A DNA stretch of 64,000 bases from Sphaerodactylus townsendi (taxonomy: Eukaryota). The DNA lies in contig NC_059427.1 of NCBI RefSeq assembly GCF_021028975.2, positions 72,106,001 to 72,170,000 of the forward strand, written 5' to 3'. This document shows, piece by piece, positions 4,438-64,000 of the stretch. The position numbers and the translations under genes were made by a program. The stretch's first letter is position 1, and each line of letters opens with the position of its first letter. The notes below the pieces were generated by a model that was not told where the DNA came from, did no database searches, and was given only the letters and a program-made list of their open reading frames with translations.

Positions 4438-4548
<111 letters not shown>

Positions 4549-5894
4549 TTATCATGGAGGCCTGGCACAGAACCCCTTGTGAGTCACTCCAGCTTCTGTC
4601 TCCTGCCACCCTTCTGCCTCCCTCAGCAAGTCCAGCCGTGTTCAAGCATCATCATTCTCATCAGCTGCTACACCTACTAAGCTGTTGTCTTCATCATACG
4701 TGAGCCATGTTCCATGACATCCTCAGGAACCCTGCAACACACAGGCATTTAATATGTGGCATACTACATTTCCTGCAAGCTACATCTCTCTAGAGCTGAT
4801 GTTCAAAAACAGAAATATACAGTGCTAGCTTTCTTATGCAATAAGAAATATCTGAGAAACCAACCAAGCTTATTTTGTCCTCCTAATTAAAATTCCCTGG
4901 GCAATGATGAAAGAGCAAAATTAAATAGCATTAACAGCCCAGTCCTACAGGGGAAGGGTGGGGGAAATGGGCCAATTCAGCTGGTGCAGGTCATTTGCCC
5001 CATATCCTGTCATTTAAGGGCACCCAGTTCATTTGCCCCCTCTGCTGATATTACGGTCACCCCCGCCTGCAGAGAGAACAACAACAGAACCATTCAGGAT
5101 CTCCACTATTCTGCTGCAGCAAAACCCAGAAGTGGGTGCCACTTCAGAGTTTCACTGGGGTCTGAGTGGACGCTGGTATGGGGGGGGGGCACATTCCCAG
5201 GGGTGCAACCACCTATATTCGGCTTCCTCCTGGGCTTTCAAACCAGGAACACTATGACCAGGGCCTCAGACTAACGCAATTCAGCCCTATAGAAGGTTTT
5301 CCAGGTAGCTGGGTTTTTTTTCTGTTTTGCAGCCTCCACATGCTACCCAAAAACCCTTTGGAGGCAATGTGGCGGTGGACCCATCCCCAGCCACCACAGT
5401 CTCTGGATTGGGCTGTAAGTATACATGAGGCTCAGCATTTGATTATTTCCTTCATAACTGGACAATTCAGATCTCCTTGTACAAGTTCACAGATGTTCCT
5501 ACTCATCTCCAGAGGCCTTACTGTTAAGAAATCTAAGCAGTATACTCTTTCCCTATCTCCACACCATTATATTACCCTAACTGTCCAGAGAAGTAGGCTA
5601 TGCAGAGAAATTACAACTGGCCCAGTGTCATCCAGTGAGCTTTGCAAGTGTGTGGAGTCCTGAATCCAAGTTCAACACTCTATCCATCACACTGGTTAAT
5701 CAATTCTCCCTTTCCACATGTTGCGTGCCTATTTCATTTCAGAAGCCCCTTGAACTCCCAATCCTATGACTGCTTTCTGAGGGCTCAGGCCCAAGAAGCA
5801 GGACAACATTCCCACCTGTACTATTTATTCCTTAATAGGGACCAGTATCTCTTTCCCCCTAATACCCAAGGGGGCACAGATAGAACCATGGGGA

Positions 5895-6035
5895 CAGTTC
5901 TACTGCACGTGCAAAATAATGCGTTTTCAAACCACTTTCACAACTGTTTGCAAGTGGATTTTGCCATTTCGCACAGCTTCAAAGAGCACTGAAAGCAGTC
6001 TGAAAGTGCATTATTCTGCATGTGCGGAATGAGCC
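5895..6035. mobile_element. MITE-like element with imperfect terminal inverted repeats
   Basis: CTGCACGTGCAAAATAATGC ... GCATTATTCTGCATGTGCGG inverted arms. Confidence 0.5.
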
Positions 6036-8979
6036 TAGCAAAAGCTTCTTCACAGGCACAATGAGAAGAGGGAGAAAGTAGGAGCACCAAGGGGGGAAGT
6101 ATCAGCATTTGAGTTCCATGTTAAACAAAGAACTCTTCAGCCTCTGAACTTTCATAGCATTCTGATCCCTTTGCTTCTTTCATTACATTCTAAAGACAGC
6201 CCACTTGTCTTACAATCTGAACTGTGCCCACTCAGATGCTTTTTCAGCTATGGTCCATTCACATCAAAAGCACTTCAGTACTACAGAATTATTTAATACT
6301 GTTTTTCCGTAGTCTGTTAAGGACCAACTGGAATGGTCCTTTCTGTTCAAACACTCCACAAATATACTGAAGTCTGGCCCTTTAATTAAAGATACAACGT
6401 CCCCAGATAAGAATGTATAAAATATTGTGACTAGGTCTGAATCAGAATCATGGCCAATTATCTCCAACTTCCAGCTAGTCAACATTCAGTACTTCAGAGG
6501 AAATACTGACTATGATTATTTGTTTGATAATTTGATTATTCCTGGTTTCACTTCTCTTGATCTGCACAAAATCTCAGCATCAGATTATCTACAACTTCAA
6601 CAGCAAACATTCTAGATCTTTATTACTCATAAAATTCTACTTCAAAGGTCTGAGATTCCAAGGCATCTTCTCATAAATTGTTAATTTGCCCTTTTTATTG
6701 ACATCTCATTCTTGTACAAGTTAGAATACCTCCTAACTTCTTTTCCAAAGTAAGAACAAACGTATCAAGGTGTGTTTTTCTTAGTCAAAAGCTTCACTAG
6801 AGACAGAAATGCAAACAGACAGACAAAATGAAGGCACCCTGCTAACAAAACTGATTCTTAACCTAGGGAAGACAGATTAATAAGAATAATTTTTATTTAG
6901 TAATTAATTTAGCAATTAATTCATCTGATATTGCAATTATTAATTAATGTTATCTCCAGAGGAAATCTTTAACTAACTATGATTTCCATTTTGCAAATAT
7001 ACAATTTAGTCAAAGAAATATGGACTTATTCAAGACTACCCAGAAAGTCTGGCTAAAAAAACTGTTTTGAACTCAAGAATGTTTAAATCTAGAGTCAGAT
7101 CCTGATTACTAAGTTTGCAATTTGAGAAATCCTTCCCAATTCTAAACGCCTAACATTTATTAAGAGTCTTATAAATACCTCCTTTCACTAGTGTAATCCA
7201 TTTTCTGAAATTCAAAAGTCTGTTAGCAAATTTGGGCAAACTATTATTTTTCTACATAAATATACATTCAGCATTGACTTTTGTATTCACAAAAAGTAAC
7301 TAGAGAACTTGTCCTAAGACTACAGGGGAAAGACTACAATCAAGCAAGGCCTGAGAAAATGAGTAAAACAAGGTGGGCTGGGGGAGGGGGGGGGAAGAGA
7401 AAAGGAGTGAGTTCACAATGAACCAAGTGGCATTTATTTGAGATGAAAGGCACTGGTGATTTACCACAATGGGGGAAAGAGCTTGGCAACCCATGGCTTT
7501 ATTAGTATTACCAGTTTAATGAAAAAAATATTGGAATATTTCAATGACAAAAATTCCAGATTCAGCAATGTTGTACAAAAGAGAAATGCCATTTGAGAGT
7601 CATTTAACAAGCTTAAATATGTTTGCTCACATTCATTCTTGACTACCTCTGTATCCCTCTCTCTATTGTCTGTTATAGATTGTAAGCTCCTTAGGGACCG
7701 GGACTGTTTTTTTTTTAAATTCTATAAACTATGAACATTGATGGTATATGTAATAAATCATCCTTGTTTACAAAAACTACTTCACAAGGATATGCACAAG
7801 GATGCTCAAATTGTTTCCCTACATTCTAATCATAAATCTAATTCCCATAGGAATAACTTTTCTACTTCTATGAGTGACCAATCCTTACTCTTTCATTGGC
7901 AGTTTAATTTATGTACCTAAGATTTGGATTCTCTCAGTACTCTGTATACACTCTTATCTAGATAACTTCTACTATCAACAATTTCCCATTTCCCCCCAAA
8001 ATGGTAATCCTGAATATGTTTTCATGTCATACAGAGTACTGGACTCAGATCCAAAAGACTTGAAATTGAAAACCATGCTCAGCCATGAAACTTCTTGGGT
8101 GGCCTTGGATAAGTACTATCTCTTCACTACACCCTAACTGGCAGGACTGTTGTGAGCATAAAATGAGATAAAAGATGTAAGGTAACTCACCCTAAACCCT
8201 GAGGATAGGGGAGAAATCTATAGGAATAGTCACAAGCAAGCCTCATGTAATAAGCTAAATATTTTGTGGTTATTCTCCACTAGCAGGCATGTTGCTAAAT
8301 TATGCTCGCCCTTTGTTTCCTGCCCTTAGGCAACTGGTTACAGTACTTTGCATCTTGTTCCACTCCTACTTTCTTTAACTACTTCAGGCCACATGCCTTT
8401 AGAAAGCCCAGCTAAATCAAACGCCTTGACCAGATACCTTTTAAAAGAAATTCGGATTATTCCAAAAGGCAATCTTCCTCTCCAAACCCACAGCATGTCA
8501 CAAATACTCAGTTCTTTCACCTCAAGTTACCCATTTACCAAACACAAAAATACAGGCAGGCTTGAAGCAACTAGGAAACCTCCAGCCGCTCTGCCCAGAC
8601 ACACAGCGCAAGCCTCCATGACATGATTTTCCCATGCAGGGAGATTAAACTGCGTTTTAAGAATGGGTCTCCACAACCTAGTTTTAGGAATGCATCCACA
8701 GGGGACGCAATACTTAACAAAGCATAGCCATCCCATCCTCCACCGAGGGAGCCACTTCCCCACTTCCCCATGAAGGCCCTCCATTCCACCCCAATTCTCA
8801 CACAGAGACATTCGCACACAAGAGCGCACCACCGAAACCGACATGCTGTCTGCAAACGCCAACATTACTCCCATCGACCCAGTAAATCCAAACCCCCATA
8901 AACAAAACAGCTTCAGCGTTATCATTCCCTCCACCTTACATGGGCTACCTTAGGAAAGACAAATCACAAAGACAGCCCC

Positions 8980-10192: not shown

Positions 10193-10712
10193 CTGTATTT
10201 GACATAAGCTTTGACAGATATAAGCTTTGCTTCTTACCACTGCACACCCCCTTCACTTCATACCATCAAGCTTACATCCATGTCTGAATGTTAACATGGC
10301 CATTGCCTGCCCAAGCAATCAAAAGCCAAATATAATGCTTTTTTTATCAGCTGCTTTTAGTGGGGCCAATATGACAAGCAGAGATACTCTTCTTTCCCAA
10401 AGTAGTTCAGGCACACTGTTTATCGTTTATTGCTCAAATCACACACTTTAACAATGCAAGAGTCTGCAAGAACTATTTACATTCTGTAATACCACTGCCC
10501 ATCGACCCAAACCCATACCCCCTAGAATAGAAATGTGACCAACAAAAGCCAATTAGATGGCTAACCAGGTAGTGACTCCATGTATACGAAGACTGGCAAA
10601 GAGACACTGAGTACCAAGACAGCTTGTACAGATAGGCTAGATCTCGCAACAGTCTTAAGGATGTCAGACAGAGACATAAGTGGGGCACAGACATAAAAGG
10701 CTTATGCTTGAT

Positions 10713-13700
10713 TCAGGTCTTTCCCTCATGTAAACAGTGCCTTCTCAAGGGTGTCAAGCTCCTCCACATTCTCAAGACATCACAGCCATATTCGGGGAAG
10801 AGTGGATAGTCTTCTGTGTCTTCAGCAAAGTTCGCCACATAAGAGTGATCATTCTCACATAGCCATGGAATAAAGTAACCAGAAGCTGATGATCTGGCAA
10901 CCTAAAAAAATACAATATGAATGAAATTCTTAAGTTATTTGTCCTAGTAACTGACATCAAAGGAGTTGCTGTTCTTTCAATTCCTTCATAATATAAATTT
11001 CAATGGGATCTCTGGTCTTCGAGTCTAGAACTCCCAAAGTTTGACTTAACCCCCAATATATATATATATAATTTTTAAACTAAAATCTTCTAGTCATCTG
11101 AACTATTCCAAAGTCAGAAGAGATGTTAAAGACAATTTGAATTCAACTTACTCGAATGTGCATGCCCACTGCTAGCCATTGCTTATGTTACCCAAACAGA
11201 GTTAAATACCTGTTTGCCTAAGATTTCTTCACATGGATTTTCTAGCATCTCTTGGGTACCAAAGGAGTCATTTGAGAAGATAAGCAGAGGACTCTTCCCG
11301 GTCATCAGCTCCTGCCTTTGCAAACCAAGAACACTTTGATTCAAATTGGATAGGGAAGCAGATAGTATCAAATAGTTTTATATCCAAGCAGGAAACCAAG
11401 AAATACACAATGAGGGGTAAAGTTTTTACCATGATAATAAACAAGCTCAAATCTTTCAGTTTCTGGAAGATTCATTCGGGAGCCATTTAGCTTCAGTTCA
11501 AAACAGCCGAAAATTATTTATACTTTCCTGCATACCTGCATCTCCATTTCCTTTCCACCTACAAGATAACTATACCAAATTTCACTATTCCCATGTCACT
11601 GATTACAAAATATTACCAAGCTCTGATGGGCAAAGGAACTGTTTCTCATTGAACAGAGACAGCTCTGTTGACAATTAACTGGGTCTCCATGATAAGGAGT
11701 AATAGGGAAAAAGCATATTTAGACTAGGTCAGTTATCCCCAAACCATGTGTCATGATTGCTTCATAAATGGATCACCAAGATACTGGCAATGGATGTTGC
11801 ACAATAAGGTACTTCCAAATATAGAGCCCAGATTAAAAGTGCATCTTTCAACAAGAGGTTTCATTCACCAAGGCAGAATGTTTGGGGAGAACTATAGACT
11901 GACGATACATGTCCCACAGTTGTGCCCCTACCCTCTCTTTCTACTCTAGCCCTTCAAATTGGTCAGATGAAACCAAGAAAAACTGATAAACACTTCCCTC
12001 TCAGGTTCTGTATTCAGTCCAGGTGGGTCCCAGGCATGCAGTGCCCGTCGCCATAGCTTAATCTGCATGTCCCAGGAACGACGACTGAACTTCTTATGCT
12101 TATTTGGAGTACGTGGGTGAATACCTGACTGCCGAGAAGCTCTGAAATGAAGCACAAAAATGTATCAGGTTCTGCTACTCAGGCTACCTTCAAGCAGTAG
12201 TAAGATTTTCGAAAACAGCAATGCAAGTAGACATTCCCCTAGTGGCTCACCAGCAGTGGTGGGATTCAAATAATTTAACAACTGATTGTTTACAAGGCAC
12301 CATTTTAACAACTGGTTCTGCCGAAGTGGTGCGAACCTGCTGAATCCCACCACTGCTCACCAGGATAAGATAAAATAAACATGTGAGATATCCAAAATCA
12401 TGGGGTACAATTACAAAAGTGTCTAATCAGCACAGGTTGGATGACTTCTAGGTGAAGAGCCAGTCTCTAGATAATAATCTATGAGGCAAGAAGCAGGTAT
12501 CACTTACTTAGGAACCTGCTGGACAAAGTGTTGGTAGCCAGTGGTGTTTTTGCCATAATCTATCTGCTTCTGCCTCCTTAGCAAGACAGCCTCATCAGTC
12601 TCCTCATCAGCTCTGCAGAGGACAGACAAGAGAATGCTGAAGACAGCAAAAAGGCAAGCATCTGACCAACTAGAGCTGCTGCCCCAAGAAAACTCACCTG
12701 AATCCTGGGCATGATTTTCTTGGCCTATATGGCCTTGTACCTACACCCACACTGACCATCTGCTTTTCAAGATATAAGGTCTGGGATGATGATGTCCTAT
12801 TCACAAGAAAATGTGGTTTTGAATACTGAACATGCAAACCCATCTGACATTTGTAAAAGGATCATATAATGCTTATCGTAGCACAGCTGCTACTTTTCTG
12901 ATCTGTACATTCTAATATATTGTAATTCTGAAATAAAGTAAAGCATAACTTTTGTTTTGTTTTTTTGCAATCCAGAGCTATGGACAAGGCCACAGAACAC
13001 AAACTGCTAAAACAGATGTCCATTGGTTTTTCTCTAGGAGACTAACAGTTGGAACTCAGCAGCAAGGCAATTGAAGATCCAGTTCAAGGTCAAAACAGAG
13101 GCATTTAACACACCATGAAGATGCCTCATACAGCACTGAGATCAAATTTAATTTTATGCCAACTGAAACACATTGAACTGCTGCCTTTAAATATACTCGA
13201 AAACTATGCAAGATAATTACAGAGGATAGGATTTTTATGGAATTACTACATTACTACAAGCATGTGCTTATACTTCACTTTTTCTCCTTAGAGAAAATTT
13301 ACCTCTCAATATATGGACAAGCATTTCCCCCATCTGATTGCAGCCTCTGCCATTAGAAACCCTTCACTTTTGCAGAGGACAATAAATAATGAAGTGCTTC
13401 CATGGTTTCTTTTGCGTTATGTTCTTAGTGGCAGCAATTTCCAAAGGAGGTAAAAGTTGCTCCCAACATATTCTCCAAACCTGTTCTCCATGTATAAGGT
13501 GGATTTCTTACTAGGTTGCTCCCTTATACATTGGAGGCACAATGATACAGGGGGGTGGGATCTATAAAAAACTGCATTCGGGTAATCCAAAATCATGAAA
13601 AACAAAGAGTTGGGAAAGACAGGAATCATTTTTCAGTGATTTAAGGCACACTCACTATCATTCTTTATTAAATTCCTTAGACTTCTCATGGTATAACACA

Positions 13701-15328
13701 TTCCAGGACATGATTTATTCTCATATTAGGGAGCAGAGGCTTTAAAAGCCTTGAAGGATGGCCTCTTAAGAAATTAAATTCCCATTGACATCCCTTCCCA
13801 GGAACTGCTCCCCAAATCTTCAGTTGGCAACTCTGGTATCTAAGCCAGGTGGCAGGTTTTGTCAACACATAGAGGAAGGGTTTTCACCATTTTTAGTACC
13901 CCCTCCTCCCCACATTCATCTTCCTGATTTCATCTTAACTTGTTTTACCTACCCATCTGTTTTGGGTGATGTCCCAGCAGCAAGTCCTCCATAGCTGGAA
14001 CCCAAAGAGCCGTAAAGCAGAGAACTGAGGGAAAGTTACAAGAAAAATCACCATGTTACAGACACCTTAAACCAGGGGTCCCCAAACTACGGCCCGGGGG
14101 CCAAATGTGGCCCCCTGAAGGCATTTATCCGGCCCGCCAGGCATGGTGGCGATGGCTCCATTCATGTGCAATGGGGGCTTGAGGGAGAGGAGGAACCGGC
14201 CCCAACGGCTGTTGATTGCAGTTACATGATGGCACCCCCAAATCTCCATGAATTTTCTGACCCAGAGTTGGAAACCTTTCATGTGGCTTAACGCCGTCTC
14301 CAGCCCTTCCCTCTCACAGCTACTCCTTGCCTTCTGTTGCTCTCAGGCTTTCTGTTCCAGCCTCACTCTCATTGGCATCAGCCAGGTATTGGTGAATCAG
14401 CACAACGCTGGCTGCTAGGGAGGAAAGAACCCAGGAAGATACCTGATCCTGGGTTAGATGGAATGCTTCATTGGGAAAGTTCTGTTTTTTTTTGTTTACG
14501 GGGGAAGGTATTCCACAGCCTCCCCAACAATATTTGGAGCCCACCTTGTACTTGACATACTTTGGTCACTGTTCTAAAAATAGACCATGACAGAAAGGCT
14601 GAAAGTTGAAATCAAACATTTTACAATAATTTGTGCATAGGAATTTGTTCATAGTTTTTTTTAGTCCGGCCCTCCAACAGTCTGAGGGACAGTGAACTGG
14701 CCCCCTGTTTAAAAAGTTTGGGGACCCCTGCCTTAAACTGTTACCAGCTGTCTAAAGGAACAGAGTTTGGATTTTCCCCATATAGTAGGTTGACCCACCA
14801 CCTAAGTGACTTCCATCAGGTAAGAAACAGCTCTCATAAGACCCCTAGTATGAAAATCAATTAATAACAGTTTCCAGCTATTACTCCTTATTCATTTTTA
14901 TTCCATTCAGTAACAATGAAGAACTAGTAAAAGCCTGTAAGTTCATTCCTGAAACATATTTCCAAACAAAGAAAAATGGGGTTTACATCTAGAATACAAA
15001 CTGAAGAAACATACAAGCTTTAAACCCCTGGAGAGAAAAAGCACTCAAGCACGATAATATAGTATCTACAGCGCAAGCATTAAACCTTTAAGTGATCCAA
15101 TTTCCCAAGCCAAAGAATACTCGTTACAAAAGTGTAGTAAACGAAGGAAACTTTCACTTAACCCGTGCCACTTTATTTCTTTACTGTTGTCCCGGTGATT
15201 TTAGAAAGAAGGAAACCACTTGCGACTATTTTCCAGACCACAAGACCATCTAACACTCCAGCCTCCCTGCACAACTCAAGATTAGTCCTGCACAACCTGT
15301 TAGTCAAAGGAACCCATCCGCCTTGCAT
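10713..15328 (-). CDS. SLBP2: Oocyte-type histone mRNA stem-loop binding protein 2 (SLBP2-like), multi-exon
   Basis: Secure RNA-binding-domain exons: 12612-12508 ([35 protein letters not shown]) and 12141-~11994/11998 ([40 protein letters not shown]), joined in phase 2. WRRxLHAWD and GYQxxxQQVPK are SLBP2-type rather than SLBP1-type (WKVALHFWD). Less certain phase-compatible exons: 15328-15297, 14024-13953, 12796-12698, 11315/11311-11210, 10901-10713 (TGA). Confidence 0.88.
12254..12355. mobile_element. hAT-type MITE (102 bp) in the SLBP2 intron between the two RBD exons
   Basis: TIRs CAGTGGTGGGATTCA / TGAATCCCACCACTG; perfect 8-bp TSD CTCACCAG (12246-12253, 12356-12363). Confidence 0.9.
14073..14730. 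mobile_element. Non-autonomous hAT/Charlie DNA transposon (658 bp)
   Basis: TIRs CAGGGGTCCCCAAACT / AGTTTGGGGACCCCTG; perfect 8-bp TSD CCTTAAAC (14065-14072, 14731-14738). Confidence 0.92.
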
Positions 15329-15329
15329 T

Positions 15330-15993
15330 TTATTCTCAATTGGTAAGTTTATGTAAAAATAACCAAGACGGCTGTAGAAGCTTCCCACAGTTTAAATCTC
15401 CCTCCGGCAGGCAGGAAGGGCGGGTTCCTAAGAGGCTAGTAACACAATTAGAGGGGGAGGGCAGAAGGATGATTCTCGGCAAGCGATTGGTTGAATGAAG
15501 AGTACAAAGGAGGACGGAAAACTCCATATAGTTGTGGAACAATAACAGATGTGATTCACAAAGGCCCGCCCCCTACACCATCCCCCAATAGCTGCTGTCT
15601 CGCCGTTGACGTATGAGCTAACGGTAGCCAATTAAAAAACCTACTAGAGACTGACTGCCGGGCTTTGTCTTCTTCCTTTGATTTGATGGTTGGTTGGTAA
15701 AAAGGGAGGTGGTTGGTCGACGCTAGACCGGTAAATTTAAGTTGCGAGAAAATGTTGATTTTTAAGTCCTCTCAGCCGGTGGGAAAATTCGGTGGAATCC
15801 AGGACTGGTGATTAATTGGAGGAGAAACAACCCAAAGACGGCTTTCTTGCTAAGAGGTTGCAACTGTCTTCTAATACGGAGGAAGAGTATCCAGAGTTGG
15901 TACTGTTTTCGTAATATCTACTGAGCTTGACTTTGCTTAGCCTTATTGTTTTCTTCTCGGACGGCTGGTTGGTGGAAGATACCGCAGGCCGTC
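15330..15993. promoter_or_regulatory. Putative bidirectional promoter shared by SLBP2 and CDC25C
   Basis: CCAAT boxes at 15486-15490 (ATTGG), 15585-15589 and 15628-15632; GC boxes ~15418 and ~15566; MYB-type YAACGG sites at 15603-15608 and 15619-15624; CHR-like TTTAAA at 15391-15396. Confidence 0.65.
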
Positions 15994-39500: not shown

Positions 39501-39647
39501 GGAAGTACAAACCACAGTGGTAAAGAAATAATTAAAAATTCTGCAGTGCCCTTTAAAAAGCTGTAACGAGAGTCTCTTGGAGCCTTGCTCGTGATCCTGT
39601 TTTTTGTGTTGGTGGCTTGGGAAACCAAGTGGAATTATCTATAAAGG

Positions 39648-40472
39648 ATGACACCAAGGAAACAAAACAGGGCACAAGTAATGCATCATGCAAACCAGGG
39701 AAGCCAATCGAACACACCAGATAAAATTAACATGAATGACGTTTGGTCAAAACTGGAACAAATAGCGGAAACAACATCAGAGACAAATAATCATGTGAAA
39801 AGGCTGGAAGAAGAGCTGATGAATATAAAACAAGAAATTAAAAAGATTGGCTTGCTGGAACAAGGGATGCACCAGATTAAAGAAGAACTGAAGCAAGTTG
39901 ACAAAAGACTGGAACAAGTAGAAGGGAAAATGGGGAATATAGATGCTGAAAGAGACACATTGGAAATGGACAACTTAAAATGGGAAAGCTAATTTAAAGA
40001 AAGATTTTTGAAGTTTAGAAAGATCCCTGAACAAGAAAATGAAAACTTGATGAACAAAATGACAGAAATATTGGCAGAATTTGTAGGAAAATCACCCCAA
40101 GATGTAGAATTTGAATTGGACGAGGCATTCAGAATTAACTCCAAAATTGCTAAGGAAAGAAACTTACCTAGAGACATACTGATAGGTTTTACTAGAAAAT
40201 CATTTAGAAATGAAATTCTACATAGACATTATGAAAAAGCCTTAAAGATAGAAGGGAGAGATATTATCATCATGAAGGAGGTACCAAGTAAAATTTTGAT
40301 TATGAGGAAGGATTTTGTAGACCTAACTTCAAGTTTAAGAAATAAATATATATATTACAAGTGGGAGATACTGATAGGAGTCTCCTTTCAATTTAAAGGT
40401 ACCAGAAGATCCATTTGGAATAAAACAGAAGCAATAGAATTTTTGAAAACATTCAGAAAAGAATTGAAGTAA
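39648..40472 (+). pseudogene. L1 ORF1 (coiled coil + RRM/CTD) with one in-frame TAA at 39990-39992
   Basis: Track ORFs 39648-39992 and 40008-40472 share a frame; heptad coiled coil followed by LPRDILIGF and YKWEILIGVSF. Confidence 0.85.
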
Positions 40473-40780
40473 TTCAGATATCGCACGAGGAGATAACAAC
40501 TAGAGGGGGTTTTTTTATGTTCAAATATCGTCTGGAGATTTAAAGTGGAGGTTTGGTACACAGAACATTAAATTAAGAGGAGCAACAATTAAGAGATATA
40601 AAAATATTTTTTTTTTTGCTTTTGTGTTCCTGTCGGGTATGGTATCAAAGTCTGGCTTGTTGAGATGTGAATTGTAACATCTTTGGTTGTGTGAAACATG
40701 AAATTACTGACATAATACTGTGTAATTTCTACTGTAACTTCTATTATTACAAATACCAATTATTTTAATTATTAAACAAA

Positions 40781-43700
40781 ATGAGTAAGATAAAATGTAT
40801 AACGTGGAATGTTAATGGGATGAACAATCCCATTAAAAGGAAGAAGGTGTACAATTTCTTAGAAATGCAAAAAGCACAAGTGATATGTGTGCAAGAAACA
40901 CATGTAATTGAGAAAGATTGCAACTTGTTAAAGAATAATAAATTAGGTGTGAATTTTGTGGCCGCTAGAGAAAAAGGAAAAAAATCGGGAATAGCTTTGT
41001 ATATAGATAGGAATTTAGGTCCAAGCTTATGTTATAAAGACACAGAAGGGCGCCTTATTGTAATAGAGGCAACTTTAAATGGAACAAAATTATTAATAGT
41101 TGGGATATATGCACCTAATACTGGGAAGCAAGCTTTTTATGACAAGGTATTTAGAAAAATTATAGATATCACAGACAATCATGAAGATGTAATGATTATG
41201 GGAGATATGAATGGCTTTGTTAATCAGGACTTAGATAAAAAATATGGAGAAAAGAAAATTGATAAGGATAAGGGGAAATTGCCGGAAACTTTTTTTGAAG
41301 GAGTAAAATACTTTAATTTGGTTGACGTGTGGCGTTTTAAGAATCAGAAAGAAAAGGAGTTTACTTATTATTCTCCAAAATATAAAACTTGGTCGAGAAT
41401 AGACATGATGTGGATATCGACAAATGTAGTAACGATGCAGTGACAAATCTGAAATTCTAGCTAATACAATATCAGACCACAAACCCAATGATATTAGAAT
41501 TGGACCAGAGGAAATAAAGTGAAGGAAAGAAAGTGGAGATTAGATAATTATTTACTGTTAGATGAGGATGTAATTTCAGATACTGTAGAAAAAAATGGAA
41601 AAGGAAATTTTTCGAGAATTAACACGGAAAATTTATGAGAAATGGAATGTGATATGGGACACTTTTTAAAGCCCAGGTAAGGGGAATTTACCTTTATCGA
41701 AATAAAAAAAACTAGAAGGAAAAAAAAAATAAGAAAAAATAGATTAAGAGGGAACTGGAGAAAGCTGCTTTAAAATGACAAAGAGATAGCGAACCATGAA
41801 AAAACAGTAAAAATACAATATTACAAGAAGAAACACATTTTATTAGACATCAATATGAAGTAGCACTAAACAGAAGAAAATAGGATAAAGGTATCTTAAA
41901 ACTAAAAGGTTCTGGTTTCTTAAACATTCAAAACTAAGTTCTCAAATAAGAATTGGTTAGCCTGGAAATTAAAAAAACAAAAGAAAAGTGGAGAATTTCA
42001 TTCATGAAATAAAAATTAATGGTGAGAAAACAAATGATAAAGAAAGGATAAAACAAGAATTTAAAATTTTTTACACAAAACTATACAAGAAAAAAGAAAG
42101 TCTTAGTGAAATTGATATAATAAACAATGTGAAATTTAAAAAACTATGAATGGGAAAAAATAGATGAAGAGTCAAAAAACTTATTAAATAAAGATATTAC
42201 TAAAGAAGAAATTATGGTAGTAATTAAGAAATTAAGAGTAAACAAAACACCAGGCCCTGATGGTATTTCGAATTTATTTTACAAAAAATTTATAGAAGAC
42301 ATAATAGAAACATTAGTAATAGTATATAACAATATCATTCAAAATGGGGTACCGGAATCGTGGAGAATGGCGAACATCACACTGATACCAAAGGAAGGAA
42401 AAGATAGATCAGAGACATCTAACTATAGGCCAATATCTCTTTTAAATTCCGACTATAAGATTTACTCAACCAAGCAATTCTGGCAAACAGATTAAAAGAA
42501 GTCCTTTTAAAAATTATTTCCCCGGACCAACTGGTTTCCTCCCAACAAGACACACATATGAAAGAACAACATGTTGAATAACAGTAGTAAACATCATAGA
42601 CTTTTATGAAAATCACCCGGATAAACAAATGGCTTTATTTTTTCTAGACATGCACAAAGCGTTTGATAGTCTTAGTTGGAATCTGATAAATGAAGTTTTA
42701 TGTAAGAAGATGTTTGGAGACAAATTCCAGACAGAAGTGGATTAAACAAATGTGCCTACCTCGGTACAACAAAGCGAGAATTATAATAAACGGGGAAAAA
42801 ACAGAAAATTGCGAAATTGAATGTGGAACCCGTCAAGGTTGCCCCTTGTCCCCATTATTATTTATTTTAGTGTTAGAAATTTTGATAGATAAAATTAAAA
42901 AGACTGACAGTATAAAAGGGACAAAAATTAAAGGGGAACAATTCAAGGTCCAAGCATATGCGGACGATTTAGTTATTATTTTGGAAGACCCGTTAGGATC
43001 TATTATAGAATTTAAAAAGATACTAGAAGAATTTGAGACAATATCTGGGTTAAAAGTAAATAGGGATAAAACGCAGATTTTGGTCAAAAATATGAGGAAC
43101 AGCGATAAAATACTTCTAGAAACTTTATGGGAGGGACAGATCACGAAGAAAGTGAAGTATTTAGGCATTAACTTGACTGCATCCAATTTAAGACTATTTG
43201 AAAATAATTACTTAGTAACATGGAACAGGATGAAAAAAGACCTCAAAATCTGGGAAAAATTAAATTTATCTATACTAGGTAAAATTGGAGTATTAAAGAT
43301 GAATGTGCTACCAAGAGTGCTCTATATGTTTAATAATCTACCGATATTAAAATCTGAGAAAATTTTTAGTATTTGGCAAACGGATATTTTGAAATTTCTT
43401 TGGGGGGGGGGGGAAACCCCGGGTCAAATACAAAGTTTTGACAGATAATAAGGAGAGAGGAGGTTTGGCGGCCCCAAATTTAAAATTATATTACGAAGCA
43501 TGCTGCCTGGTTTGGTTGAAAGACTGGTTTTCAATTAAGAACAAGAGACTATTAGCACTTGAAGGGGCAGATCTGAGATATGGAACACATGCATATTTGT
43601 GGTTTCATAAAGAAAAGTTGAATAAACAATTCTTTCAACATCCCTTCAGGTTTGCTCTGTATAAAATTTGGGATAAATATAAAAACAGATTGTATAGAAA

Positions 43701-44646
43701 TGTGCCATGGTGGATATCTCCCCATGAAGCCCTTCTGAATAAGAACGTGCTGGAGAAAGGCTGGTTAAAACTGTATGATTTATTAAAACTGGTGCAGACA
43801 GAAAAAGGACCACGAGTGGAAATCAGAACGATGGAAGAATTAGAACTGATCGGATGGAATGTGAACTGGTGGTTGTACCAACAACTGTACAGCATCATAA
43901 AGAAAGAAGCGACGCCACTGTGGATTCAAGGTTTTGAAGACATACTTTATTTAAATCTTCTGAATAAAAATGATCATTTAATTAAACGAATGTATAAGCT
44001 GTGTTTAGATCTAGAAATGGAAGATGAGGTGATAAAAGAATACATGGTAAATTGGGCTAGAGATATTGGTCATACAATCCCACTGGAGAGATGGGAAAAA
44101 GTATGGAATTCAGGACTTAAAAATATTATTAGTAATGATATTAAAGAAAACCAATACAAGATCTGGTTTAGGTGGTACATTACGCCAAAGCAACTGGCTA
44201 AATTTTCTGGTTCGTCCAACAAATGTTGGAAATGTAAGTCGGAAATAGGAAGTCTTTATCATGTATTATGGGAATGCAAGAAAGTTAAGAAGTTTTGGTG
44301 TAGTATACACAAGGAAATTCAAAAAATCTTGAAAGTAAATATAAAATGCACGCCGGAACTATACCTGTTGGGAATGAGCGATAACAGGCAAATAACTGAA
44401 AATAAAACACTATTCCAACACTTATCAACGGCGGCTAGGATTATGCTTGCCAGATACTGGCGTCAACAGACAATCCCATCGATACAAGAATGGCGATATA
44501 AAGTAATGGACCTAGTAAAAACAGCAAGACTAGTAGGATACGAATTGATGGAGATGAATGGCAAATTTAAGAATGTATGGTCAGCATGGATTAAATATAT
44601 TGAAGAGAAATTAAAACAAAAATATGTGATCTTAGATATAATTTAA
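40781..44646 (+). pseudogene. L1 ORF2 (APE endonuclease, reverse transcriptase, CCHC domain), disrupted
   Basis: TWNVNG, VQETH, GDMN, SRID endonuclease motifs; PGPDG, YRPISLLN, GTRQGCPLSP, YADD RT motifs; CWKC..HVLWEC zinc knuckle. Several stops/frameshifts at ~41440-42700 and a frameshift in the poly-G run at ~43402-43413. Confidence 0.92.
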
Positions 44647-51095: not shown

Positions 51096-52699
51096 AAATG
51101 GAGGGGAGTTACAACCACAAATGTGTTGAAGACAACAGAAGTGGTGTTACATTTATCTCTTAATATGACTAGTTTTACTTTCGGCATTCAAGTTTTAAAA
51201 GTGAGTTATCAAGTGATATATTACATTGATCAAGAACCTTTTCTTTGTACACCTCTACTGTTTACTGGCCTCACAGTGAAAATTTTTCACGCACATACCA
51301 CTCTAGCTTCTTAACCATCAACCAAAGTTTCTGTAGAAATGTTCTGGTTAAATGCTATCAAAAACATTCTGAAACACCATATACAGTATAGAAAAGTCCA
51401 TCAGATCACTCCCTCGTTATGTTGTATGGATGATAAGACAGAAGAGTATAACCAAATAGTCTTCTGATAATTTCTTTATACTTTGCTGACACACTTTCTT
51501 TGCCATTTCTCTTCAGAACCACTAAGCCTGTGTTGGACAGAGAGAGTGGCAGCTGTCAATCTTCATAAGTGTGTACAGAAATTCTGCTCCCTGTCTCTTA
51601 ATCACCTTGAAAGTTGTATGTTTGGAACAGTGATGTACAGGACAAAGAATATAACCAGTAGTTAGGGAGAAAGACCCCCTTCCTTAGGAAAGCCTAAAAC
51701 AACACTAGCTGACATTCAGCTTAGTAGTTAAGCAATCTCATTTGTATCATGAATGTTTGTTTTGCTCTTTACCTTCCTTGCAACCTGCATGTTTAGCAAA
51801 GCAGCTCACATAGGATCCCCAGGTGCCCTGTGCAGCCACTGATCAAAACTGCTTAGCATCACTGATGCTGCACAACATAAACCCTATAGAACCATGGCTT
51901 AGGTCCCTATGCTATATGCTCACAATTGTCATTTGCACCATATAGGTGATATTTTTCTCTTTTGCCTTTTAACAGTCTGCAATGCATTCACCTCAAATTA
52001 CATGAATGTATGCTTCTGCTTGTCAAACAGCTTGGCTATCTCACTGAGAAATACTGTTTTATTCAGTAACTACCAAACCGTGCTTCAGACCAGTTCTGAA
52101 TATTTACAGCTCGCCTCAATCTTGTAAGTTTACTGGGAAACAGCCTTGCTCTGAACGAACTCCAGCTAAGTAGGCGCAGGACTACAGCCTTAGCCTTCAG
52201 GTCAAACAAAACCCGGTGGCATTTTAAAGACTAACAAAATGTATTCCATCATAAGCTTTTATGAGTCAGAGCTCTATTTAGGCAATGTGTGGATGGTGCT
52301 ACTGGACTTCTATGTTATTTTGCTGCTAAAAGCTAACAACATAGCTACCCCTATGAAGTCTTCAAGTAAGTGATCTTGCTTATTATTATTTATAGAAAGC
52401 TAAACAGAAACCTGCCTCTTGTCTCTTAGCACCCACAATTTTGAGGTGCAAAAAGCTTGAATGAGCTCCTTCATTTTGTTTTACTATGCTCCTAGACTGC
52501 ATAAATGCTGTTTCAAGGAAGTCAATGTATATTTAATACAATAACAACCAGTTAGTTAAGGAATCTTTCTGCTAAAATTAATACTCGATTAAATTAGTTT
52601 CGTTTTAGTTTTTCCCCCCAGTATCAATATTTGCCAAGTGCAAACCTCAGTTCAACCCATGGCATTGTCTGCATCCCTCCTCCTCGGGGCAAAGAAGCA

Positions 52700-54180
52700 A
52701 AGCTGGACCTCGACAGACTGGAGAGCGGGAGAAGGCGCGAAGGAAGCAACCGCTCTCGCGCTTCAAAGGGGACGGGGGGAAGCTGACCCCACCCGCCCGG
52801 CTAGCCAGTCTACGTTGTCGAGGAGCTGGCAGAGTCCAGTCTGCCACTCTGGCCAACAAGCCTGTTCCGAAATCACTTGCTAACGCTGCTTTGGCCAAGC
52901 CGGAGCAGCGCTCAGTCCGAGATCGGCAAGCCTGCCACCCCAAGGTCGAAATCTATACGAGGAGCTCAGCTGCACCCACAGCGCACGGCACGCTCCGTTT
53001 CCCGCCAGCGTCGGCCGGCCAAGCCCTCCCTCCCTCCCTCCCCCTCCGTCCCTCCCTCAGTCTGGCAATTACTGTCTCGCTCCACCAGGGTGTTTCGTCG
53101 CCGCGCGCTTCACTCGCGCCCCGCTTGCAGCCGCTTCTCGCTTTCTGCTCTCCTCCGCGCGCGCACCTGCCAAGAAGCCCGTGCCCAGGAGGCGAGGCGG
53201 GGCCAGGACGGGGCGAGACCTCGCGAAGACTGGACGGACGGCCGCCTGCGGGGAGGGACGCTGCCTAGCTGGCCGCGGCGCTGACAGCAGCCCAGACCCC
53301 GCTGTCCAAGGGGAACATGTGAGCTCCCCCCAGGGACCAGCTCTGAACTGAGCGACCCCCGCAGTGCCGCCTCTGCTCCCGCCGACATGGGACTCCCCCT
53401 GCTTCTAGGACTGCTGTTCTCCCAAACCGGTAATGGGCTAGGGCGCCGGTGGTTTGTCCTGACGGGTCCCCTGCGCGTCTCAGCCCCGTCCTCTGGGCAT
53501 GCATGCTTGCCGGGATGGTAATTCCGCTGCCTGCGCGGAGATTTAGGATTGCGCTGCGGGGGCCTCTCGGCATGGCGCGTAGGGGTGTGTGTGTGTGTGT
53601 GAATTCAGAGCATTGGGCACAGGGGGTGCTTTCCAAAGAGGAACCCCCCCGCCGGCTTTCTGGTGCAGGTTAGAGCTCTGGCTTGGGTTATTTGCCTGGT
53701 TTCCCCTCGGACTGTTCTGTTCATCTCCTTTCTCTGCTCTCCCTTTGCAAACGCAAAGAGAATCCTTTGGCTGCAAACCTGGTCGCCGCTTCCTAGGAGG
53801 TAAGCCCCACAACGAGACTTGCTTCCGAGAAAGTGGATGGAAGTGGGCTGTGAAACGCAGTCCCGAGTTGACCTCTGTGGCTCGGATCTGCCGGCGATGA
53901 CCTGGAACCCTGTTCGGAAGCTGATGGGATTGTTTGCGAGCGCCGGGAGTGGAAGTAGGGGTCGGGGAGCGCTGAGCGTCCCATCCCGCGGCTTCCGAAA
54001 GGAGAGGGAAAGTTCCTTCCGTGTGGACCACGTAGCTGTTTTACAGCAAGGTTCATTTCCCAGCAGTTTTCCGTCGAAGAAACTTTCAGCAAGTTCATTC
54101 CCAGCCATCTCAAGGATGTTTTCCTTGGCTGACATGCTAGAACTTATTTTCTAACGCGCAGAAGCGACTTGCAACAGGGC
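52700..54180 (+). promoter_or_regulatory. GFRA3: CpG island spanning the GFRA3 promoter and exon 1
   Basis: High GC and CpG density surrounding the GFRA3 start codon. Confidence 0.8.
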
Positions 54181-56346: not shown

Positions 56347-59300
56347 TATTCTTGGTAGCTGTCATGAACACACTAGCATGTCATGTGGTAGATCATAAAT
56401 AAAAATATAGCGTTGTTAAATTACTTATGGCCATGGTTTGTCAGAAGAGAAAAGCTTGTGACTTCTGAATGGTATGGATATTATGGATTAATGAGCCCTT
56501 TGGGAACAGAAGTGTTTGCATTTAGGAAAACTGATGTAAGCTTCTTTGATCATGAGAGATGTAAATCAAAGTTATACAATGGCTTTTATCTATGAAATGT
56601 CAAGTGTGGTGTGTGAATGAACTTTTCTTTTACATGTGTCTGGACAAACCTTGAGTGATTGAGTCTATGCTAAGAGTCTCCTGAGGAGTTAACTCACAAT
56701 AAAATATCTTTGTTACAATGCCTTTCTGAACAGGGCCATTTAATTTTTGGGAAAGCTTGTAAATTTGTAATAGGAAGAGTGTAAGTTAATATGCGATGGT
56801 AAACCCAATTGTGTGTGTAGGGGGGGTGGCATGGTGGATGTGAACATATATGCTCAAGAATAGACCAAAAGTTGTATGCACTAAGAATTCAAAAGCAGTT
56901 TTAGCTCTGCGACTGTCATATATCCAGTCATTTCCCCACCCCTTGCATTCAGGTACAGAGAACACTGTGGTAATTGACCAGAAAATAAGTTTATTGGCTT
57001 GTGACTTTTGTGAGATCTTAGTTATGATATGGACATCTGGCTGCATTATCCTTTTTGAAAAATCACAGTATCATGCCCTAAGAACATGTTTGGAGTGTCA
57101 AATTCTTAGATCTTTTAGAAAGTAAAAACCCACTGATTTGCTGGGCCATGCAGGATGCCCCACCAAAAAGTTAATTTCATCTGAATTCAACACCAAAAAC
57201 CCAATTTTAACGTTGGCTGTTTCCACATGGATTATTTGTCCCAGATTTAATACTGTTGGGAAATAGGATTTTTCCCTTCTTCCTCACAGCATAATGATGC
57301 ATTCATTTTCTCATCTTTTTTCACTCTTCCCAAATTTTCTACAGGTTGAAATTTTGAAATGCTGAAATTTTGGGAACCAAAGCCCAAATGGCTGCTGTGG
57401 GGGCGGGGGAGGGGGTTGGATTTCTTGCTTACACAGCAGCCATTTTCCCTACCTTCTCAGTGGACATTTCTTTCCTATACCATTGGAGGCTCCCCCACCC
57501 ACCCCCATGGCTTTCCAAACTTTCCCTTCCTGTTTCATAGCTGAGCCATAGTATAATGTTGCAGCTCTGCTGTGAAAGGGGGTGGAGGAATGTGGAGCTT
57601 TTCTCTGCAATTTGAAGGAAGAACATAGAATACAGAAGCCACATCTTGTACCTGGATTGGACACAATGTGGTATAGATCATCCCAAATAGAGTGGGGACA
57701 ATCTGCTGACCACATAGGGAGAGATAGCCCATGATACAATGAAATGTATGCAGGTGCAGATTGGAAGGCTAAAACAGCTGTAGCAAAAGACCCAGCACAT
57801 CAATGGAAGGAGGAGGGAGAAAGAGCTGGCAGAAAGAAGTCTCCTGGTTTGCCTCTCTGCCTTGTAAAGAGTATGGACTGCCACATTGTACCCACCTACC
57901 TTGTACAGAGTAGGGGTTGCTGCTACAAGCTTGTATGACTCATGCCTGCCTCACACAAGATGGGTCGCTGGCTTGTAGTGGCCTGCCCTGCATGAAATGG
58001 GAGCCAATACCTTGTGGCAGTGGCTTTCATAGTGGCAGTGCCCCCTACCCATCTTCCTCATGCGAAGTAAGAAATGTTGGATCATAGTAGCTTCCATCTG
58101 CCTTGCATGGGGGCCAACCTGCTTGAAGTGAGTTTTGCCTCATTCAAGGCCAGGGTGGACACAGCTGGGAGGGAGAGCTCCCTCAGCATACCAGGGCTTG
58201 TCTTGATGGCTTTCAGGATCAATCCACCTATGAATGCATTCATTTTTATTAGTCCACATTTAAAACTTTGAAAATACTTTTGAAGTCGTTGAATGGTACT
58301 TGTCAATCCATGTTAATATTTGGAAAAATAATGTCTAGGCACCTCTCAGTAGGCCATTACTGAAATAATGGAACATGATCAGGTGAATGCCCTCAGGATG
58401 AATTTGTAACACGTAAACACCTTTCTCTATGTGGACAGGAGGCCTTCTTGCTCATTCCATTGAACAGCTGAACAGCTGTATAACAGCCGAGAACCTCTGT
58501 CTGGCCGACCCTGTCTGCAATGCCACCTATCGGATTCTGGGAACCTGTTCCCATTCCTATGCTAAGAACAGTTTCTTCACACTGGACCATGGAGCCTGGA
58601 ACAAATGCCTGCAGGCAGAAACCGTTATTAGAAACAGCCATTTTCAGGAATGCAAGTGTCAGCGCCGCACACAAAAGCAGGAGGAGCACTGCCTGCGCAT
58701 CTATTGGACTGTGCATTCCACTGTCTCAAAAGGTGAGGGAAGCTTTAATTATCTTTAGAGGGAAGCTTTAGAGGGAAGCTTTAGTTATATGGCTTGGTAG
58801 TATCACCAGCATCCTTCCTCTAGTGGTGGAGGGCAGGGAGTGAGGATGGAATTTTGTGACCCAAAACAATACCTCAGATCCAGGAAGAAGAGAATCTTAC
58901 TAACACTTGTTCCTCATTCTGGATTAGATTGATGAACTGTTTATTCCAGTACTGTCTAGCAGTAGCTCTCCAAAGTCTGTTTTAGAAGATTTTTTCCCAG
59001 CTCTACTACTTACAATGTTTTTAACTAAAGGCTCCCATAACTAAAGACTCCAAGGGTTGGGCCTGAGACTTACAAAGCACTGAGATGTAACTATTCCCAT
59101 AAAAGCTCAAGCTACAACAAATCTATAAGTCTATGACGGCCCATTATGCCCAAGATGTTTGCTGCATGGTGGAGACAAATGTCAGGTATGGCAAGATTCC
59201 TTGTATGAATGTATTTCCTCCAGCCCTGCTTTCACTTTCCCCTCTCTCTGTGGCAAGCAAATCCAATTATAGCATGATTTTAATATTGCTACGCTACCAG

Positions 59301-62300: not shown

Positions 62301-63061
62301 TTTTCCCATTTTAACATTTTTGCTGGATCAGTGATTTAAGCTGTATTGAAATGATAAAATAATGTTGTGAAACTGTCCACTAGATTGTATCCATGATTTT
62401 ACTCTGAAAAATCTAATCTAACTCTTGCTTAGCTTGTGACAAAGCAGTAAATAAGTAATGGAATAATTAAGGACTCATTTTTTTAAAAAATCTGAATCTG
62501 CTGGTTTCCAATGCTTCAAGAGTTGTTAGGGATTTAGGAGAACATTATTTCAAATGCTCTGTGCTATTTTGTACTTCTAGATCTTTTTTTTTTTTAAAAA
62601 AACCATCCTTTCAATAGTGAAGAACTTGATGGAAATTGTCCAATTGTCTTATTTAATTTTCCCCTGGGAGATCGCTACTGGAACTGGGTCTATTAAACCT
62701 TGTATTGTTGTAATTTTGCAGAGTCCCATTTAGTTGGGGACACAACAAATCCCTGCCTGCAAGTTGCTCAAGTTTGTAGCCTGAATCGTAGGTGCAGACG
62801 TCTTCGTTCAACATATGTTTCTAACTGCAGCCCAAAGGATGGGCACGCCTGCAATCAACGCAAATGCCACCGAGAACTGAGGCATTTCTTTGGGAAAGTT
62901 GATATGGATTTCACCAAGAGATTTCTCTTTTGCTCCTGTCAAGATGAGTTCTGTGGAGAGCGACGCAGGAAAACGATTGTCCCAGATTGCTCCTTCCAAG
63001 GCAGTACTCAGCCAAACTGCCTTGTCCTGTTGGACACATGCCTGAAAGATTATATTTGCAA
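53387..63061 (+). CDS. GFRA3: GDNF family receptor alpha-3 (artemin co-receptor), first four coding exons; continues beyond the window
   Basis: Exons 53387-53429 (signal peptide MGLPLLLGLLFSQT, Kozak GACATGG), 58439-58732 (Cys-rich D1, CLRIYWTVH), 61870-61962 (LEMSPY linker), 62722-63061 (D2, CGERRRKTIVPDCS). Phases are compatible; adjacency to CDC25C supports the GFRA3 paralog. Confidence 0.92.
54230..54450 (-). mobile_element. Older tRNA-derived SINE in GFRA3 intron 1
   Basis: TGTGACTGGCCCAAGGTCACC core and GGATTCAAACC (reverse B box). Confidence 0.6.
56272..56346. repeat. (AAT)n microsatellite
   Basis: Long AAT run with a short AGT-interrupted lead-in. Confidence 0.95.
59137..59430 (+). 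repeat. Interspersed repeat, second copy of 30200-30490
   Basis: Direct similarity to 30200-30490. Confidence 0.7.
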
Positions 63062-64000
63062 GTAGGTCTGGCATTGGGGGTACTGGGATGGCTGTAAACA
63101 GTAAGTTAAACATCCCATGTCATGTGGGCACCTAGGTTCTAAAGTGTACCTTAAACTTGGCGAAGTAATAAAATAAGCAAATGAAAATGTACTGTGTGAA
63201 GGGACTAACCATTATGCAGAACTGTATAAAATGCATCCTTTCAAATGCAAACTGTAGATTTTTGGGGGATAATGATATCTATTCAATAAAACTGTTATTT
63301 AGATCAGGGATGAGCAACTTCTTCAGTCTGGCAAAGCTACTTTATTCCCCAAATAGTTGTTGGTGAGTCAGAAATGCTCAACTGCACCATTAACATTTGC
63401 ACCATGTGTCAGTAACAGGTTCATACATATGAAGTTTATTTCCTTTTACATTAGTCTTTTTAGTGTTGCTGGCACGAGACTCATCTGCCATCAACCAGGT
63501 GTGCATCCATCATCATATGCAAATGCATATATTTACATATTATATAAAATATTAATGAACAATGCTGTACAGTATTAAAGTGTGAGATTTCAATTTTGTA
63601 TTATCTGAAGAAATTTTTGATAGGGCTACCAGGAACCATGCTCTGGGAACCATGTCCAACCCACAGGCTGCTGGTTGCCCATCTCTAACTTAGCATTGCT
63701 CTGAAGTTACAGGATGTGCTATATATTTGTTTGTTTGGGTTTGGGCTTTTTTACATGCTTCTGGTCCCATACTGCTTTGATTTATTCCTCAATTTTCTGT
63801 ATGCATTTTTGTGCCTTTAATTTTCCTTTGGGTGTTTTGTTGTTCTCTCCCCCACCTTGACTGTTTTCTTCTGGCTCTTTTGAGGCCACTTTTACCCCCA
63901 TTTTTTTTCTGGAAGCTGATTCTGAGTTGACTTTTTTCTAATGCATAATATTTCTATCAGTTTTCTTTGTCCTTCCTACTCCCATAACCTCACTTTTCAA

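Follow-up and report, generated by a model that had tools for sequence, protein, structure and literature searches.

Xenopus and zebrafish SLBP2 are oocyte-specific proteins with links to the storage of histones or of their mRNA (PMC6239174, PMC5435866, PMC7226043). For Xenopus SLBP2, storage and repression of histone mRNA have been proposed (PMC6239174), and we find the phenotype described for the zebrafish maternal slbp2 knockout (PMC7226043) consistent with a storage role. Bovine SLBP2 protein is present in oocytes and in embryos preceding embryonic genome activation (pre-EGA embryos; PMC7226043), and the cattle gene order is GFRA3, CDC25C, SLBP2, FAM53C (PMC7764440). Arg181 makes the only base-specific contact of SLBP, to G7 of the stem-loop, and Thr171 lies within the TPNK motif (PMC10388802). 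Two regions matter for processing, the DR motif and the 20 residues that follow the RNA-binding domain: the Xenopus SLBP2 residues placed there abolish processing activity and recruitment of the U7 small nuclear ribonucleoprotein (snRNP) (PMC5435866). Here, a gene of this family was analysed in the gecko Sphaerodactylus townsendi. It lies at positions 10713-15328, on the minus strand, of a stretch of 64,000 nucleotides (hereafter the window; contig NC_059427.1, positions 72,106,001 to 72,170,000 of the forward strand). We are confident that it is a real and apparently intact SLBP2-type gene of seven exons, which RefSeq already annotates.

The locus was compared with the S. townsendi assembly GCA_021028975.2 (CM037616.2) and showed 0 differences across 24,616 bases. 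The range of the coding sequence (CDS) of the RefSeq gene LOC125429496 (4,616 bases) is exactly 10713-15328 on the minus strand. LOC125429496 and the gene described here do not differ: DNA, CDS range and the seven exons are identical. Two products are attached to it: XP_048346601.1 (248 aa), named 'uncharacterized protein LOC125429496 isoform X1', and XP_048346602.1 (201 aa), named 'oocyte-specific histone RNA stem-loop-binding protein 2-like'. From MVSVGVGT onward, the S. townsendi isoform X2 protein equals the window product letter for letter. The same protein cluster also holds a 147-aa read-through model from the genome submitter. The best protein matches of exon 5, in Podarcis, Lacerta, Anolis, turtles and Gavialis, were reptile proteins that carry the NCBI name SLBP2. 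When Anolis SLBP2 was used as the query of a word search, SLBP2 proteins were listed in more than 20 squamates, and also in turtles, crocodilians, ratites, tuatara, amphibians, fish and many mammals. The gene and its exon model are already public for this assembly, and there is nothing new in them as a gene discovery. A first-pass annotation of the window had called the gene hidden. That description fails, since the identical seven-exon model is LOC125429496 in the same assembly and SLBP2 is annotated across reptiles. The limits that it had given were correct: the stop codon ends at 10713, and 15328 is the A of the ATG.

The minus strand was scanned from stop to stop, and two open pieces with plain SLBP sequence were found. 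The upstream piece (window:12507-12740:-) matches the Pfam family PF15247 (SLBP_RNA_bind) over positions 1-31 of the 70 in the profile (E 1.9e-10), and the other (window:11949-12164:-) matches it over positions 32-70 of 70 (E 1.3e-15). The two exons concerned encode a complete SLBP RNA-binding domain, as had been proposed. The joined protein XP_048346601.1 scores 108 bits over profile positions 1-70 of 70, for a cut-off of 27. Both pieces align in register to the human SLBP chain 4L8R_C (residues 23-57 and 60-98), with gecko HPRTPNK and SRRSWD placed on human HPKTPNK and SRRSWD. The gecko protein retains both the threonine of TPNK (human Thr171) and the arginine that corresponds to human Arg181. 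Where human SLBP1 reads AYDRY the gecko protein reads GYQHF, QH replacing the DR motif, and its sequence after the domain (GLNTEPER...) is unrelated to that of SLBP1 (AEEGCDLQE...).

A maximum-likelihood tree (LG+C20+F+G4, 313 columns) was built from 30 proteins named SLBP2 and 21 named SLBP1. The SLBP1 and SLBP2 sets were split with support of 100/99. The window protein was placed inside gecko SLBP2 (100/99), inside squamate SLBP2 (100/99) and within tetrapod SLBP2 together with Xenopus laevis SLBP2. It did not group with SLBP1, and the SLBP2-type identity suggested by the first-pass annotation was confirmed. Xenopus laevis SLBP2 and zebrafish Slbp2 belong to the same clade as the gecko protein and share with it the SLBP2-type substitutions in the domain and the absence of the DR motif. 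The gecko protein differs from both in being shorter (248 aa versus about 270-330), in having a gecko-specific C-terminal tail and in the absence of most of the long N-terminus seen in amphibians and fish, apart from a short Trp-containing motif. Bovine SLBP2 is of the mammalian lineage and is diverged from the gecko protein outside the RNA-binding domain. Human SLBP1 (SLBP/HBP; structures 4L8R and 4QOZ) has an RNA-binding domain of the same fold family, with the TPNK motif and the equivalent of Arg181 conserved between the two proteins. It is a separate paralogue, and two of its features that processing depends on, the DR motif and the C-terminal flank, are missing from the gecko gene.

Exons were located by mapping the 248-aa XP_048346601.1 exactly onto the locus, and translation of these exons from the window reproduces the protein. 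The CDS totals 747 nt, that is 248 codons and a stop, in seven exons on the minus strand (Table 1). Past the stop codon, AATAAA motifs at 10431, 10192, 10182 and 9827 are candidate polyadenylation signals. Five of the six introns are GT-AG and the annotated intron 5 is GG-AG. The earlier claim of phase-compatible exons with a continuous frame is right for the open frame and for these five introns, and does not extend to intron 5 as annotated. Exon 2 measures 78 nt in the three other geckos compared (Paroedura, Heteronotia and Eublepharis), so that Sphaerodactylus differs in frame by 6 nt. The MVSVGVGT motif of exon 3 precedes the domain in the SLBP2 matches from tetrapods, and does so in a weaker form in those from fish. 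A 'GDPW' look-alike at 14083 was considered as an alternative first exon. It was rejected because it lies inside the high-copy transposable-element block of intron 1, which is absent from relative B (the source of DNA run X4), and because it is the ATG exon at 15328 that all the geckos conserve. Conserved and intact counterparts of exons 1 and 2 (ATG, 32 nt, 78 nt, splice sites) were seen in Heteronotia (locus L003, ~5221-7137) and in Eublepharis (locus L004, ~6323-7446). The RefSeq SLBP2 models of these two species omit both exons and are probably 5'-incomplete.

Table 1. Coordinates in the window of the SLBP2 exons, of the spacer towards CDC25C and of repeats within introns
Feature	Position	Strand	Description
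Exon 1	15328-15297	-	ATG, 32 nt, donor AG/gt; ATG, length and GT donor kept in Paroedura, Heteronotia and Eublepharis
Exon 2	14024-13953	-	72 nt; resembles the N-termini of Podarcis and Rhineura; splice sites kept in geckos
Exon 3	12796-12698	-	99 nt; MVSVGVGT motif
Exon 4	12612-12508	-	First half of the RNA-binding domain; PF15247 positions 1-31; 4L8R_C residues 23-57
Exon 5	12141-11998	-	Second half of the RNA-binding domain, TPNK motif, SRRSWD; PF15247 positions 32-70; 4L8R_C residues 60-98; RefSeq end, donor GG
Exon 6	11315-11210	-	106 nt; tblastn with Anolis SLBP2 residues 126-164, E 2e-5
Exon 7	10901-10713	-	189 nt including the TGA stop (10715-10713); gecko-type C-terminal tail
Spacer from SLBP2 ATG to CDC25C CDS start	15329-15993		665 bp, head to head; CCAAT at ~15492, TTTAAA at ~15395
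High-copy transposable-element block, intron 1	14065-14730		Word depth 1e5-1e6; absent from the contig of relative B (X4 record 29), in which 14064 is followed directly by 14731
Very high-copy short repeat, intron 4	12254-12356		~100 bp; word depth ~6e6; contigs of all four runs break there

Selection was estimated as omega, the ratio of nonsynonymous to synonymous substitution rates (dN/dS), by the pairwise Nei-Gojobori method among the four geckos (Sphaerodactylus, Paroedura, Heteronotia and Eublepharis). Omega was 0.04-0.09 in the RNA-binding domain, which is under strong purifying selection. It was 0.33 in the N-terminus (bootstrap confidence interval 0.15-0.68) and 0.31-0.45 over all the codons shared by each pair. 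The whole locus can be aligned among the geckos; identity is 0.79-0.94 in exons 1-5 versus 0.67-0.85 in introns, and exon 3 is 0.87-0.88 identical to the other geckos versus 0.73-0.85 for the introns that flank it. None of the indels in exons 1, 2, 6 and 7 shifts the frame, and the four species share the start and stop codons and, for these exons, the splice sites that were compared. In exons 1-6, relative B has three changes from the reference, of which one is synonymous and two are missense (Q100E and L162F). No stop or frameshift was found in it over the same exons, which are those covered by run X4. The gene had been predicted to be apparently intact, and the open frame, the in-frame indels and the low omega of the RNA-binding domain agree with this: omega is not near 1 overall across the geckos and no disabling mutation was found in the relatives.

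The intron-5 donor was examined separately. Exon 5 ends in GAGAG and the intron starts with ggaagt, which makes the annotated donor GG (11996-11997) and not GT. The same GG is found in Paroedura and Eublepharis, and Heteronotia has a perfect GAGAG/gtaagt at the ancestral position (the slash marks the junction). The RefSeq models of Sphaerodactylus and Paroedura use a GG-AG intron 5; in Sphaerodactylus this would join the two exons as ...GAGAG/GCAGGAG. Two canonical GT-AG pairings keep the frame, with donors 4 and 6 nt downstream. One, with a donor after 11992 and the acceptor of the annotated intron, joins ...GGGAAGT/GCAGGAG and gives ...PEREV/QEL..., as in the RefSeq model of Eublepharis. The other, with a donor after 11994 and an acceptor that starts exon 6 at 11311, joins ...GGGAA/GAGCTG and gives ...PERE/EL..., the form present in the Varanus, Elgaria and Crotalus proteins. 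DNA variants were checked in four runs of DNA contigs from a single study, and none of the runs had a different letter at 11996-11997. We rejected an error of the assembly or a single aberrant allele as the origin of the GG, given the lack of an alternative allele in the four runs and the same GG in two other gecko assemblies. In one of the runs, 11987 T>C places a G at position +5 of the downstream donor.

Several points weigh against an intact seven-exon gene with the function of its namesakes. The exact C-terminal join is uncertain because the annotated intron-5 donor is GG. The C-terminal exons are weakly constrained: omega in the C-terminus is 0.47-0.87, several of the intervals including 1, and the identity of exons 6-7 is 0.74-0.80, barely above that of their flanks. 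The first-pass annotation had described both termini as highly diverged; this applies to the C-terminus, which is diverged as well as weakly constrained, and not to the N-terminal exons, which are conserved among squamates. Oocyte specificity and the exon junctions are predictions, and RNA binding and the absence of processing are read from conserved or substituted residues. We hold it as possible, at low confidence, that gecko SLBP2 is spliced via the non-canonical GG or a weak shifted donor, or that its usual product is a short protein limited to the N-terminus and the RNA-binding domain, the C-terminal domain then being in the process of loss. This would concern Sphaerodactylus, Paroedura and Eublepharis and, according to read-through protein models, Gekko and Euleptes. 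Exons 6 and 7, being weakly constrained, would be in keeping with such a loss. That the short form is the main product of a real gene in most geckos, with intron 5 retained and exons 6-7 drifting, appears rather unlikely to us. It would account for the GG donor of three geckos where Heteronotia has gtaagt, for the lack of a GT allele in the four DNA runs, for the omega and the near-intron identity of exons 6 and 7 and for the submitter's model, which is the read-through form; there are also read-through models in Gekko, Euleptes and tuatara, and lacertid RefSeq models end soon after the domain. In all four geckos, however, exon 7 measures 189 nt and ends in the same TGA; it is free of indels while its flanks carry indels of 7 and 8 nt, and exon 6 has only 3-nt indels. 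In two gecko pairs, C-terminal omega is below 1, with only 1% of bootstraps at or above 1. The canonical in-frame GT-AG options 4 and 6 nt downstream also speak for a full-length product, and the Eublepharis RefSeq model uses one of them.

The selection data disfavour the reading of the locus as a pseudogene, whether decaying or unitary, in which the frame is simply still open; SLBP2 is a pseudogene in human, mouse and rabbit. SLBP2 was lost repeatedly in mammals (PMC7226043) and the intron-5 donor is non-canonical, but the RNA-binding domain keeps its low omega across geckos, the frame, ATG, stop and compared splice sites are kept in four gecko genera, and the reference, as well as relative B in exons 1-6, is free of stops and frameshifts. 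We regard a pseudogene as very improbable. It is just as improbable, in our view, that the gene is a second somatic SLBP1-like gene, active in histone pre-mRNA processing and not an oocyte storage factor. A complete RNA-binding domain with its RNA-contact residues would suit such a protein; the tree, however, sets it with SLBP2 and apart from SLBP1 (100/99), and in this protein the DR motif is replaced by QH and the 'AEEG.DLQ' stretch by unrelated sequence; processing requires both of these regions (PMC5435866). An apparently intact SLBP2-type gene is the reading that we retain for 10713-15328.

A head-to-head neighbour has a CDS range that starts at 15994 on the plus strand. It encodes M-inducer_phosp and Rhodanese domains and is a CDC25 gene; among the PDB matches of one of its exons, human CDC25C (59.9 bits) ranks above CDC25A (44.3) and CDC25B (36). 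The 665-bp spacer between the two genes is 0.71-0.76 identical among geckos. Downstream, on the SLBP2 strand, a FAM53-family gene has its CDS start at 4545, SLBP2 being upstream of it in a tail-to-head arrangement. By synteny, this gene would be FAM53C specifically. From the Pfam families of the neighbours, the order CDC25-SLBP2-FAM53 was found in all four geckos. The location of SLBP2 between CDC25C and FAM53C is a known amniote arrangement. The placement between FAM53C and CDC25C made in the first-pass annotation is that of the published cattle locus (PMC7764440), the name FAM53C being given by synteny. Exons with GDNF/GAS1 domains are present at 58417-58755 and 62697-63062 (+), downstream of a GC-rich island (CpG-rich 52600-54150). 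By synteny they are GFRA3-like, and they complete the GFRA3-CDC25C-SLBP2-FAM53C block that the gecko locus has in common with bovine SLBP2 (PMC7764440).

SLBP1 is at a different locus. In human it adjoins FAM53A at 4p16.3. In Varanus the order is TACC3-TMEM129-SLBP1, with SLBP1 beside TMEM129 and TACC3, and no FAM53 gene was called within 10 kb of SLBP1. No neighbours were found within 10 kb at the Rhineura SLBP1 locus. At the SLBP1 locus of emu (Dromaius novaehollandiae CM072391.1; L006 1-1691 and 10001-16686), two SLBP_RNA_bind genes were seen in tandem within 10 kb.

Two repeats interrupt the introns of the gecko gene (Table 1). The block in intron 1 could be a lineage-specific insertion in S. 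townsendi or a deletion in relative B. Elsewhere in the window, a retrotransposon resembling a long interspersed nuclear element (LINE) was observed in AT-rich sequence at 39645-44643 (+). Among its long open pieces is one with an endonuclease domain (PF03372) at 40769-41440. The Pfam search gave no match for its 417-aa open piece at 43393-44643.

From its conserved residues, the gecko protein is predicted to bind the 3' stem-loop of replication-dependent histone mRNAs via its RNA-binding domain. Without the DR motif and the SLBP1-type 20 residues, it would not recruit the U7 snRNP. It probably does not support 3'-end processing, because the DR motif and the 20 post-domain residues needed for this recruitment are replaced. 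Its role would probably be the storage or silencing of maternal histone mRNA in oocytes until maturation. As an oocyte-type paralogue, it would be expected to support neither processing nor translation and to be degraded when the oocyte matures. By analogy with Xenopus and zebrafish, it is reasonable to propose that maternal histone-mRNA storage has been retained in the gecko. To our knowledge, there is no experimental study of histone-mRNA handling in reptile oocytes. What is added here to the public gene model is the purifying selection on the gecko RNA-binding domain, the conservation of the seven exons in four genera, including the N-terminal exons that are missing from two RefSeq models, and the non-canonical donor. 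Gecko SLBP2 may be considered a reasonable candidate for work on the handling of histone mRNA in reptile oocytes.

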